Origin: Haliotis rubra
Lineage: Eukaryota
Reading direction: 5' to 3'
Assembly (NCBI RefSeq): GCF_003918875.1
Contig: NW_025765316.1
Location: 124,001-188,000, forward strand
Length of the DNA stretch: 64,000 nt
Shown here one piece after another: positions 52,905-57,743 of this stretch. The position numbers were made by a program, and so were the translations under genes. Within the stretch, counting starts at the first letter, position 1, and each line of letters starts with the position of its first letter. The notes under the pieces were generated by a model. The model ran no database searches. It was not told the origin of the DNA and saw nothing but the letters and a program-made list of their open reading frames with translations.

Positions 52905-53989
52905 TCACCCAAGAATAGACGATACCGTCTTCTTTACCTCCAATATCAACATTTTCAGTCCAGTTTCACGAACGCTGATATTACGGTTTGTCCCCATGTC
53001 CATTACATCTCGAAATGAATCTCTGAAATGTAAATTCATGTCATTTGCCATCACTCGTTCTTCTTTCCTACATTCCACCTCGTACTGCCTTTGATGTTTT
53101 TCTATCATCATTTCGTAACCCCGGATCTCCTGTTGCACTGCGTATATTTCGGAGGACTCCGTGGAATCATCTGACCTCTCCTGTTTGAGGTCCTGCAGCC
53201 TCTGTTGAAGTTGGGCTAGAATTTCATGTTTAGATGTTTCAGCTTTAGCCTTTTCATGCTTCATCTTCCGCTTTCGCTTGACGTAATCTTTCTTGTTCTG
53301 GACATCTATCCTGTGCTCAAGTCTTAGCTGTTCCTTTCTGTCCTCTATAATCCTACTAGCGGAAACATAGATCCAGTTGCTGTAGCACCTTCCTCGATTT
53401 GCAACTACCATTTTATCAACTGCATTGAGTAATGATTGGACATCTTGATCTCGATCTTCCTCTGGTGCCCTATTGTTGAATGCCACAAATCTATGTTGAC
53501 ATGCTAGGAGTAAAGTCTTCAGCCTATCTGGTGCTTCTGCAATAAATTCGTCAACAGTGACGTTGTTATGAATCAAGTCATCCTTCCTTGTAAACAGGAT
53601 TATCAGATACTTCATCATGTCGTCTCAAAATATTTGTGAAAAGAGGTCCACCGTGGATTGCTCTTTGTCGGTAAAGCGGTCGATCTTGATGACAAGGACA
53701 AAAGCATGAATACCTGGAACAGTCATCCAAACACAGCGGGCAACTTCTCTAGCAATTTCTTCAATTTTCATATTTGTATCAAACATACCAGGTGTGTCAA
53801 TAACTTGAATCTGCCGCCCATTTCTATTGGTTTCACCTCTCTGACATTGATCAGTTTGTGATCGACCTGAAACACCTGTGTGGAAAATCTGTCTATTGAG
53901 GATGTTGTTTCCAGTCACACTTTTACCGGATCCTGTTGATCCCAGGAGTACCATCTTGATAGTCTCAGCGGAACTTCCCTGCCCTTCAT
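52905..53989 (-). pseudogene. GIMAP-E GTPase exon with one in-frame premature stop
   Basis: ORFs 53625-54059 and 52905-53618 are in the same frame and joined by TTT TGA GAC GAC ATG, where paralogs read FG[DEG][DNE]M, implying GGA>TGA. Phase-1 acceptor atttcag| at 53991-53990. Exon is 1085 nt, the same as GIMAP-C. Confidence 0.85.
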
Positions 53990-54730
53990 CTGAAATATAT
54001 GCATTAAAATGAGTCACGGAACAGCGACACATAACTGAATTTGTTTTCTGAAAATACAATATTTAATCCTGTCGGGAGATGATTTGATTTGAGCTATAAA
54101 TGTTTTTTAGGAAATGTACAGTATTTCTGTCATATCAATGATTGGAATTTAGTGATTGTTTGTGGCAGTGTTTTGGAGATGATTTGAGGGTTAGCTTTGT
54201 TGTAAGATGTAAGCAGAGGTGTAATGTGACAAGATGTATATTCGAAATACATATCATTCAAAGGTAAAAGACACTTCCAAATGGCATGTTCATGTTATTC
54301 AACGCTATATGGCGGAGGTGTGTAAATATAAAATGAATAAAGACCATCCAGTGATTAACATCATGAGCATCAATCCTCTTTTATTTTGGATCGATGAGAC
54401 TTGCATGAACCACTTCAGCGAAAGAATAAACTGGTCTGCACGGTGAGTGGGTCATCCACCACTTGAACGTATAGGATAGATACCGCATTTCATTTTTAGG
54501 TTGCATGAAAATACATGTATATTTTTTAAAATAGTGGGAGGGTCAAAATCTTTCTCGGATTATTCAGAACAAAACAAATGGTATAGTGTTCTGAAAACAA
54601 CTGTAGTTCTTTAGGTTCAGACAGCAAAACCTACAAAACGGAAAACAAATCCCAGGAGTCGATTTCAAGAATTATACATACATGTGACAGTTTCAGGAAA
54701 AAAAGGTAAACAAAGTTCAGATTACAGTAC

Positions 54731-55909
54731 CTGTGAAAGTTGTAGGGCGATCACATATGCTGTTATTTGAACTTGAAGTTCTGTACGAATCCATGTTGCC
54801 AAATGTGTCAACAGCTTGTGGTCGGTGCATCAATTCATGCGGCCATATTGGTTGATGATAAAACGACAGCAGTCTTTGTAACCATTCGTCTTTGGACACT
54901 CGACACACTGTCCCTTTTTGGAATGTGTAAACCTCTGGTCCTGCTTTATCATAGAACACAATACCTTTGAAATGGTTTATGTTAACACACAGTACACATT
55001 TGTCTGTACCCTGTTCTGGAATAGCATATGCTGCTATCAAACCAGAAGGTGCTTCCAGAAATGACCCTTTCAGAGTTAAAACGACCAGGTCTGTTTTCAA
55101 TTTATTGTTTAGACTTTGTATCAGTTTCTTTATGTCAAAGCAGAGATTAAATGAATTAATATAACGCTTCTTTGTTTTATAACCCTGATCATTAAATGGT
55201 TTCTCGGAGATGCCTATGTAGAATCGTCCACCTCCCTGAAGCTTTGACATAGAAGTGATGTTATGATTCAGTTTCAGATCGTGCCAAATACAGTCAGTTA
55301 CATTTTCAACTGCTGCTTCACCTTGTGCCTGTTGTGGCAGCCATTTCAACTCTGACTCTCTGTCTTCATGCAATGGTATATCGTCAACACTAGTGTGTGG
55401 AATCATGTTTGCAGGGATTTGCGTTTCATTATCTCCACCACGCTTCAATATCGTAGCAATGACGGAACATGGAGCGTTTACATTTTCAAAGTCATTTCGC
55501 ATCTTTGTTTTGCTGTCTAAAGTCGATACGCCACGAATTTGTTCAATTTTGAATAACAGAAAGTCATGTATATTTTCAAAAGACGAGATATTCGATAACA
55601 ATTTCCGGGAAAAATAGTCACAGTATTGACAACCCTCCGGAAGCAGAGTAGAAAATCGTTTCACGATAGCTTCATCAAGTAATTCCAGGTCCCTGTCCCA
55701 TTTCTGCTGCCCGTCAACGTGTATCAGGAGAACCCCACCGTCTGAATTCAGCAAGGCGTTTGCTGCCTTTGCCAGCTGATGTAAAGTGTCCTCCTTTTGT
55801 TGTGTTTTCTTGCCCGTTACAGTGGCTCTGCTCACATGTTCTAAAAGGATGCTTTCATTAAAATGTTTCTCTTTGTACTTCTCTTCTGTTCTTTTGCAGG
55901 ATTTGCATT
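54731..55909 (-). CDS. Schlafen (AlbA_2, two-lobed) core-domain exon, copy 1; open frame, predicted to splice into GIMAP-E
   Basis: ANALLNSDGGVLLI (vertebrate CALLNSGGGVI), HEDRESELK (E-x4-E-x-K), SKLQGGGRFYIGISE (FANTxGGYLFIGVDD), GPEVY...VSKDEWLQRLL. 1179-nt phase 1-1 exon, gctacag|...CAG|gtact. Confidence 0.85.
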
Positions 55910-55974
55910 CTGTAGCAAATGAAAAAAACAAACATTCAAAGTGTGAAGGAGTTTAAAAAGCGCTTTCCACTTAC

Positions 55975-56021
55975 AATCGTCCATGAGGATGTGTTTGTGG
56001 ATCACTATCAAATATCTTAGG
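55975..56021 (-). other. Putative start micro-exon upstream of the Schlafen exon (duplicated at about 57809-57855)
   Basis: ttttcccag|...ATG GAC GAT T|gtaagt followed by a clean 65-nt intron. Splicing gives T+AA = TAA, a stop at codon 4. Confidence 0.5.
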
Positions 56022-56563
56022 CTGGGAAAATATACAGAGCACTAGCTATTATTCAAACGCATGAAACAAGTTTCAGTTTGGATGTGATGAAGCGCGTTTA
56101 ACATGCCACAGTGGGTAGCCTAGTCGTTAACGCGTCATGCTAAAGACCCGGGTTCGATTCCCACATGGGTACAATGTGTACAGTGCATTTCCGAAGTCCC
56201 TCGCCTTGATACTCAGACTGGCTAAAAAGATCGTTGATCGAAAATATCGTCGACAGGAAAAAGTAGTTATGGTTATCGATATGAAAATAGTTTCGTCGAT
56301 AATATCGTTCATAAACTTCATTTCATTTTTAGGTTGCATGAAAATACATGTATATTTTTTTAAAATAGTGGGAGGGTCAAAATCTTTCTCGGATTATTCA
56401 GAACAAAACAAATGGTATAGTGTTCTGAAAACAACTGTAGTTCTTTAGGTTCAGACAGCAAAACCTACAAAACGGAAAACAAATCCCAGGAGTCGATTTC
56501 AAGAATTATACATACATGTGACAGTTTCAGGAAAAAAGGTAAACAAAGTTCAGATTACAGTAC

Positions 56564-57743
56564 CTGTGAAAGTTGTAGGGCGATCACATATGCTGTTATT
56601 TGAACTTGAAGTTCTGTACGAATCCATGTTGCCAAATGTGTCAACAGCTTGTGGTCGGTGCGTCAATTCATGCGGCCATATTGGTTGATGATAAAACGAC
56701 AGCAGTCTTTGTAACCATTCGTCTTTGGACACTCGACACACTGTCCCTTTTTGGAATGTGTAAACCTCTGGTCCTGCTTTATCATAGAACACAATACCTT
56801 TGAAATGGTTTATGTTAACACACAGTACACATTTGTCTGTACCCTGTTCTGGAATAGCATATGCTGCTATCAAACCAGAAGGTGCTTCCAGAAATGACCC
56901 TTTCAGAGTTAAAACGACCAGGTCTGTTTTCAATTTATTGTTTAGACTTTGTATCAGTTTCTTTATGTCAAAGCAGAGATTAAATGAATTAATATAACGC
57001 TTCTTTGTTTTATAACCCTGATCATTAAATGGTTTCTCGGAGATGCCTATGTAGAATCGTCCACCTCCCTGAAGCTTTGACATAGAAGTGATGTTATGAT
57101 TCAGTTTCAGATCGTGCCAAATACAGTCAGTTACATTTTCAACTGCTGCTTCACCTTGTGCCTGTTGTGGCAGCCATTTCAACTCTGACTCTCTGTCTTC
57201 ATGCAATGGTATATCGTCAACACTAGTGTGTCGAATCATGTTTGCAGGGATTTGCGTTTCATTATCTCCACCACGCTTCAATATCGTAGCAATGACGGAA
57301 CATGGAGCGTTTACATTTTCAAAGTCATTTCGCATCTTTGTTTTGCTGTCTAAAGTCGATACGCCACGAATTTGTTCAATTTTGAATAACAGAAAGTCAT
57401 GTATATTTTCAAAAGACGAGATATTCGATAACAATTTCCGGGAAAAAATAGTCACAGTATTGGCAACCCTCCGGAAGCAGAGTAGAAAATCGTTTCCCGA
57501 TAGCTTCATCAAGTAATTCCAGGTCCCTGTCCCATTTCTGCTGCCCGTCAACGTGTATCAGGAGAACCCCACCATCTGAATTCAGCAAGGCGTTTGCTGC
57601 CTTTGCCAGCTGATGTAAAGTGTCCTCCTTTTGTTGTGTTTTCTTGCCCGTTACAGTGGCTCTGCTCACATGTTCTAAAAGGATGCTTTCATTAAAATGT
57701 TTCTCTTTGTACTTCTCTTCTGTTCTTTTGCAGGATTTGCATT
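56564..57743 (-). pseudogene. Schlafen core-domain exon, copy 2, with +1 frameshift
   Basis: 1180 nt; A6 run at 57443-57448 versus A5 in copy 1 splits the frame into ORFs 57409-57804 and 56550-57551. Confidence 0.85.

Follow-up and report, generated by a model that had tools for sequence, protein, structure and literature searches.

In vertebrates, Schlafen ribonucleases (RNases) are antiviral and anticancer factors; recent work has revealed them as ancient, modular effectors of bacterial defence as well. Schlafen cores cleave tRNA or rRNA; SLFN12 is activated by induced pairing through PDE3A, and SLFN11 by ligand binding to a partner domain. The molecular function of GIMAPs, a family of immune GTPases, is poorly understood. 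GIMAPs self-associate in a nucleotide-dependent way, and a membrane anchor is a feature of only some of them. Here we analyzed a stretch of 64,000 nucleotides from the blacklip abalone Haliotis rubra (contig NW_025765316.1, positions 124,001 to 188,000; referred to as the window, in whose own numbering all H. rubra coordinates are given), which contains the gene LOC124268457. We consider it likely that this locus is a genuine chimeric immune gene of abalones, in which a Schlafen RNase core is joined to a GIMAP, and that the H. rubra copy is disabled.

The best structural and profile matches of the abalone core are the long vertebrate Schlafens SLFN11, SLFN13, and SLFN14. Like the abalone protein, these have an N-terminal two-lobed core with an E-x4-E-x-K motif and a third acidic residue, followed by a P-loop NTPase in the same polypeptide. 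The abalone protein differs from them in having an AIG1/GIMAP GTPase of the TRAFAC class, combined with a coiled coil, instead of a superfamily 1 (SF1) helicase, a disordered linker of about 40 residues instead of the SWADL/linker domain, and E instead of D as the third acidic residue. The short, core-only Schlafens (mouse group I and an abalone family of proteins of about 370 residues) are also related. The abalone fused core nests within this abalone family, but its stop codon has given way to a splice donor, and a linker tail is present at the C-terminal end.

On the GIMAP side, the abalone gene resembles the mollusc GIMAP/AIG GTPases, in which AIG1 is combined with a coiled coil and the genes form tandem arrays with variable N-terminal modules. 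The AIGs of Biomphalaria come in 19 architectures, including N-terminal death domain/CARD, kinase, and ARM modules, none of them with a Schlafen (PMC7053062). SAMD9/SAMD9L and the prokaryotic Schlafen defence proteins are similar in coupling an AlbA-type tRNase effector to a sensor or NTPase switch; unlike in the abalone fusion, their partners are STAND NTPase, histidine kinase, or Ig-like domains. The tRNase domain of SAMD9 was a weak structural match of the abalone core in our Foldseek search. Across life, the Schlafen RNase has been described as a modular effector fused to sensors and varied partner domains (PMC13056530), and the word “GTPase” is absent from the main text of that paper. Assorted N-terminal domains on AIG/GIMAPs and varied partners of Schlafens are thus known, and what appears to be new is their pairing: we found no description of a Schlafen plus GIMAP/AIG1 architecture in the searchable literature, in agreement with a first-pass annotation of this DNA that had thought it undescribed. 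The fusion proteins are already in RefSeq under the name “uncharacterized protein.” A natural Schlafen-GIMAP protein provides a direct, testable hypothesis for both families, as it invites the questions of whether an effector domain can be placed under the control of a GIMAP switch and whether GTPase-induced dimerization can activate a Schlafen core.

The Schlafen exon and its junction with a GIMAP exon

The first-pass annotation had claimed that one minus-strand exon (54731-55909) encodes a complete Schlafen core with its catalytic motif, that its phase-1 donor joins the phase-1 acceptor of a GIMAP exon in frame without a zinc-finger exon between the two, and that a nonsense codon may have disabled this copy. 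All of these claims held. The exon is 1179 nt long, open, and in phase 1 at both ends. Its 392 residues comprise a two-lobed core (1-351) and a disordered linker (352-392). An AlphaFold2 model of the exon product, built on 36 relatives, had a predicted local distance difference test score (pLDDT) of 88.5 and a predicted template modelling score (pTM) of 0.83. When this model was compared with the PDB by Foldseek, the best 25 matches were all Schlafen N-terminal cores (SLFN5, SLFN11, SLFN12, SLFN13, and SLFN14; E 7e-17 to 1e-12 over about 350 columns), and the target-normalised template modelling (TM) score against isolated N-terminal-domain Schlafen entries was 0.69-0.75. A search of PDB sequences with a family profile agreed: pig SLFN11-N was matched over its whole length at E = 2.5e-16 with the catalytic motif aligned, and SLFN14, SLFN12, and SLFN5 were matched at E 3e-11 to 1.6e-7.

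The family profile and the fold search were needed because simpler searches fell short. Of the two Pfam domains that had been anticipated in the spliced product, AIG1 was found above its threshold, whereas SLFN_AlbA_2 scored 18 bits on the window exon, below the gathering cut-off of 25.3 bits. A single-sequence search of PDB sequences with the exon gave a marginal match (SLFN14, E = 0.026), and sequence identity to the long vertebrate Schlafens is 13-16%. Some paralogues pass the SLFN_AlbA_2 threshold (e.g., P0030, at 30.7 bits). The sub-threshold scores are probably the reason why databases name these proteins “uncharacterized.”

The residues E181, E186, and K188 of the exon translation form the E-x4-E-x-K motif (55344-55367, minus strand), which aligns onto ESQSIEFK / ESTHVEFK of SLFN11 and SLFN14. 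E235 (55203-55205, minus strand) aligns onto the second D of the GVDDK motif (D249 of the SLFN14 chain by our count). Each of E181, K188, and E235 is shared by 35 of the 36 aligned family members. At position 186, 17 members have E and 18 have Q; the clade of fused genes has E here and retains all three acidic residues and the lysine. The exon product is thus a complete Schlafen core whose active site appears intact, with a flexible tail behind it.

The Schlafen exon lies between a cag| acceptor and an ACA G|gtactg donor. It is separated from the AIG1 exon by a GT..AG intron of 741 nt (53990-54730, minus strand), in which no RanBP/NZF finger motif was found. The AIG1 exon (52905-53989, minus strand) starts at 53989 behind tttcag|, in phase 1, and runs through the terminal stop codon at 52905-52907. 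The spliced join reads ...PTTFT-D-EGQGSS..., letter for letter as in the NCBI isoforms X1-X5 of LOC124268457, a gene on an unplaced scaffold of 201 kb whose NCBI models match the proteins encoded in the window. We could rebuild all five isoforms (436, 378, 310, 309, and 251 residues) exactly from window coordinates. Each uses an internal ATG of one of two tandem copies of the Schlafen exon (57509 or 55502), the donor of that copy, and the acceptor at 53989, and each ends at an in-frame TGA at 53627-53625. Isoforms X1, X3, and X4 start at ATG 57509 and use the upstream copy. Three isoforms splice out an internal intron of 378 or 381 nt: X5 lacks 54941-55321 (381 nt, minus strand), which removes most of the C-lobe, and the corresponding optional intron of the upstream copy runs from 56774 (X4) or 56777 (X3) to 57154. 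These alternative acceptors, three bases apart, are of the NAGNAG type and look like those of transcript-based models.

The range first assigned to the gene, 52905-57743, contains the exons described for it; it also holds the upstream Schlafen copy, and the start exon falls outside it. The upstream copy (56564-57743, minus strand) is 1180 nt long and keeps the same donor. It belongs to a tandem duplication unit of 1833/1834 nt that includes the Schlafen exon, and, compared with the downstream copy, it has 5 substitutions and, in a T-run near 57448 (T5/T6), an additional T that shifts the frame. The coding end of exon 1, ATGGAAA, lies at 61930-61936 on the minus strand with the phase-1 donor gtaagt next to it. 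It is the only match in the window, and the first exons of the orthologues in H. asinina and H. rufescens align with it. The exon thus contributes the start codon and four bases, and the 5' untranslated region continues upstream. Intron 1 (57744-61929, minus strand) is about 4.2 kb in H. rubra, compared with just 1.3-1.75 kb in H. rufescens and H. asinina; it is swollen by a satellite array of about 81-nt units (about 58400-61260) and carries a tRNA-like repeat.

Joined in this order, exon 1, the downstream Schlafen copy, and the AIG1 exon give an open frame of 516 codons that ends at the TGA. Any H. rubra transcript that includes the upstream copy meets a stop at codon 113. Exon 1 could also splice straight to the AIG1 exon in frame, and in no species does the AIG1 exon have a start codon of its own ahead of the P-loop.

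The AIG1 exon of H. rubra is 66% identical to its H. asinina orthologue in one frame. It has no frameshifts, and the frame is continuous except for the one TGA (53625-53627, minus strand). The exon retains G1 (GSTGSGKS, read off the translation at 53919-53942, minus strand), G3 (DTPG), G4 (TRKD), and the conserved box, but the TGA falls between G3 and G4 and halves the GTPase domain. Pfam AIG1 scores 122 bits before the TGA and 69.5 bits after it, compared with 202.5 bits in the intact H. asinina protein, which has an uninterrupted G domain with the G1-G5 motifs. Recoding of the TGA was considered and rejected, as the site is an ordinary sense codon in all three orthologous sequences compared and nothing else hints at recoding. 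As read from the current assembly, the H. rubra copy is disabled and would at best yield a Schlafen core with half a GTPase.

The H. asinina protein (P0086) gives a view of the intact architecture. AIG1 was the only Pfam domain found in it, with no SWADL linker domain or SF1 helicase after the core. The full-length AlphaFold2 model (pLDDT 83.4, pTM 0.54) comprises the core (1-355), a disordered linker (356-397), the G domain (about 398-590), and two helices (596-662 and 664-721) that form a C-terminal hairpin with arms of about 60 residues each. The ESM Atlas model matches a GIMAP4-like cluster at a TM score of 0.83 over residues 402-738; the look-alikes in the Atlas were GIMAP clusters only, none with a Schlafen domain, and no large GIMAP cluster there showed a Schlafen core. 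The first-pass annotation had suggested that the GIMAP part could oligomerize on membranes. This part of its proposal found no support in the sequence: there is no hydrophobic 19-residue window outside the G-domain core, the Kyte-Doolittle maximum of the C-terminal tail is 0.92, and the model shows a long helical hairpin and not a transmembrane tail. Membrane anchoring was therefore rejected.

Orthologous loci and the origin of the fusion

A search with the 436-residue isoform recovered an uninterrupted H. asinina protein of 746 residues, 76% identical over 95% of the query. An intact protein combining an AlbA_2-type core with AIG1, which the first-pass annotation had proposed to look for in related genomes, thus exists. 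At the H. asinina locus (L003), ATGGACA|gtaagt comes first, and the Schlafen exon (1161 nt) is separated from the AIG1 exon by an intron of 758 nt; the translation of the three exons equals the 746-residue database protein exactly. The same search returned no other, intact H. rubra protein of Schlafen-GIMAP architecture.

H. rufescens has two tandem Schlafen plus AIG1 pairs (L001, 877-3716 and 10001-13626). Synonymous divergence (dS) between their two AIG1 copies is about 0.03, and the two pairs have suffered different damage. A frameshift and a stop codon interrupt the upstream Schlafen exon, which keeps its tail and donor; the 477-residue product annotated by NCBI has the length expected if this donor is spliced to the acceptor of the AIG1 exon. 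The downstream pair, like the H. cracherodii locus, carries a deletion of about 590 nt that extends from the tail-coding sequence into the intron. As the deletion removed the donor, a stop now ends the Schlafen frame. NCBI annotates two genes here, with a stand-alone protein of 372 residues from the Schlafen part; the AIG1 exon, 110 nt downstream of the 372-residue protein, stays open.

H. rubra, H. asinina, and the upstream copy of H. rufescens have the donor, the acceptor, and the intron in common. That the order of the exons, both phase-1 junctions, and the intron are kept in H. asinina and one H. rufescens copy argues that the arrangement is not due to chance. We also considered whether two separate genes, as in the Californian species H. 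rufescens and H. cracherodii, might be the ancestral state. This was rejected, as the alignment shows that the tail and the donor were deleted in these species. It follows that the two-gene state arose secondarily and that the fusion is older than the split of the four species.

Pairwise ratios of nonsynonymous to synonymous divergence (dN/dS) were 0.35-0.5 for both halves between species groups and about 0.6 on the H. rubra branch, values that point to moderate constraint and to decay that set in only recently. In a maximum-likelihood tree, to which midpoint rooting only was applied, the four orthologous cores formed a clade with 100/100 support. This clade was sister to an intronless stand-alone gene (P0004) and nested deep among stand-alone paralogues, and the nearest paralogues of the fused core have no GIMAP neighbor. 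The first-pass annotation had suggested that the H. rubra gene may be a member of a family of such fusions. We found instead a single orthologous Haliotis locus, with nearly all other relatives of the core standing alone. As judged from these comparisons, the fusion is a single event in the Haliotis lineage that was later damaged independently in at least three ways: the nonsense codon of H. rubra, the donor-removing deletion of H. rufescens and H. cracherodii, and the broken core of the second H. rufescens copy. This independent break-up in three of the four species illustrates the birth-and-death turnover of chimeric immune genes.

An exhaustive HMMER search for the core yielded 78 relatives (representatives at 50% identity), all of them named “uncharacterized.” Those whose sources we looked up belong to Haliotis or to the gastropod genera Batillaria and Littorina. 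Stand-alone proteins of 340-400 residues (about 370) make up most of the 78. Abalones thus carry a large unnamed family of stand-alone Schlafen cores, in which active and inactive nucleases may be mixed. The family is missed by standard domain searches, and it bears on mollusc immunity and on disease in aquaculture. None of the ten longest representative relatives contains AIG1; they have ApoL, Ig, or fn3 domains, or nothing, instead. A search for further long proteins containing the core returned the H. asinina protein only. A predicted H. rufescens gene model (P0032, L006) of 798 residues combines a Schlafen core (about 73-375) with Apolipoprotein L (Pfam ApoL, E = 6.7e-12); it would be a second abalone Schlafen core fused to an immune effector domain.

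These comparisons suggest how the chimera may have arisen. A copy of a stand-alone Schlafen-core gene would have landed in the GIMAP cluster, where its single large coding exon would have gained a phase-1 donor and so become able to splice to the phase-1 AIG1 exon of a GIMAP. The Schlafen exon would then sit where neighboring GIMAPs carry RanBP-type zinc-finger exons.

Readings of the fusion

The most likely reading of the intact protein, in our analysis, would be an RNase effector whose pairing is controlled by a GIMAP switch and a coiled coil. The Schlafen core would cleave tRNA or rRNA and thereby shut down translation in an infected cell. Nucleotide-dependent dimerization or oligomerization of the GIMAP domain, together with the coiled coil, would pair two Schlafen cores, so that the GIMAP part would act as the helicase domain does in SLFN11 and as PDE3A does for SLFN12. 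Splicing may add further products. As the exons of the gene all meet in phase 1, a transcript that skips the Schlafen exon would encode a GIMAP alone. A transcript that retains the 741-nt intron could encode a Schlafen-only product. It could further be proposed that the intact protein is a GTP-switched RNase serving as an antiviral or antibacterial abortive-infection effector, in which self-association of GIMAP and coiled coil pairs the cores and triggers tRNA cleavage, and that abalones have a habit of plugging a phase-1 Schlafen exon into immune effector genes (GIMAP here, ApoL in H. rufescens). In this extended form the proposal is speculative, and we think it rather unlikely to be right in full.

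Several observations weigh against a functional RNase-GIMAP fusion. The Schlafen core scores below the Pfam threshold, and its third acidic residue is E where D would be expected from the vertebrate proteins. Q at the second acidic position in half of the wider family means that not all of its members need be active nucleases. The pTM of the full-length H. asinina model gives no confident packing or contact between the domains. The junctions are taken from NCBI gene models. An uninterrupted reading frame across the junction is found in H. asinina only, some part being broken or split in the other three of the four species, and the fusion may therefore be dispensable.

One alternative is that the Schlafen core has little or no catalytic activity and serves as a nucleic-acid-binding sensor, by which the GIMAP GTPase is recruited or activated on foreign RNA or DNA, in parallel with the zinc-finger modules of the neighboring genes. 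The core does occupy the slot of those NZF modules, Q is found at the second acidic site in half of the family, and SLFN5-type cores bind nucleic acids with little RNase activity. We nevertheless regard a sensor role as improbable, since the fused clade keeps its three acidic residues and the lysine and since across life the Schlafen domain is usually the effector that is fused to sensors (PMC13056530).

A second alternative concerns H. rubra itself, where the nonsense codon, the homopolymer frameshift, or both could be assembly errors or alleles of the sequenced individual, the gene being functional. This would fit the frameshift, a one-base length difference in a T5/T6 run and so a common type of error, as well as the small, unplaced scaffold; moreover, a branch dN/dS of about 0.6 rather than 1 means that any inactivation was recent. 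The nonsense codon, however, is a substitution and not a homopolymer error, the NCBI models all stop at it, and H. rubra gave no other intact protein in the search that found the one from H. asinina. A functional H. rubra gene is therefore doubtful, though on a par with the sensor role.

Least likely of all is that a Schlafen-core gene simply lies upstream of a separate GIMAP gene and that the chimeras are prediction artefacts or rare read-through splicing without a functional fusion protein: the stand-alone state of nearly all 78 family representatives, the two-gene annotation of the Californian species, the in-frame route from exon 1 to the AIG1 exon, and the mere four codons (GTVI) that read-through past the donor at 54731 would add before a TGA at 54719-54717 all speak for it, but they are outweighed by a Schlafen exon that in H. 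rubra, H. asinina, and the upstream copy of H. rufescens stays open as far as the conserved phase-1 GT donor, by the origin of the Californian state in the donor-removing deletion, by the lack of a start codon ahead of the P-loop in every species, by the recurrence of the same junction in three separate NCBI annotations, and by the transcript-like NAGNAG acceptors among the isoforms.

The GIMAP cluster and its surroundings

The window lies in a GIMAP gene cluster and holds five AIG1/GIMAP exons. Besides that of the chimeric gene, there are three on the minus strand (3814-5004, 19544-20566, and 30095-31264) and one on the plus strand (47840-49099). A motif search of the window found four RanBP2/NZF-type zinc-finger motifs, all on the minus strand (6683-6742, 20973-21032, 31701-31760, and 45277-45336), upstream of the first three minus-strand GIMAP exons, and none upstream of the fourth, which starts at 53989. 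The product of a neighboring gene (P0087) contains Pfam Zn_ribbon_RanBP and AIG1. The NZF motifs ahead of the three other exons indicate that N-terminal modules vary among the members of one GIMAP cluster.

Sequences resembling tRNAs occur at 57940-58010, at 56110-56180, and near 50337-50627, with one per 1.83-kb duplication unit, and are probably copies of a short interspersed nuclear element. ARAGORN and Rfam found no RNA genes in the window, so we do not call these repeats tRNA genes. Runs of N, either assembly gaps or masked stretches, at about 10480-10620 and about 27360-27500 appear as X-runs in the translations of open reading frames. A second satellite array, built of a 15-nt repeat (GCAGTATGGTTTGTT-like), occupies 62387-64000 and reaches the end of the window; it gives rise to long spurious open reading frames on both strands.

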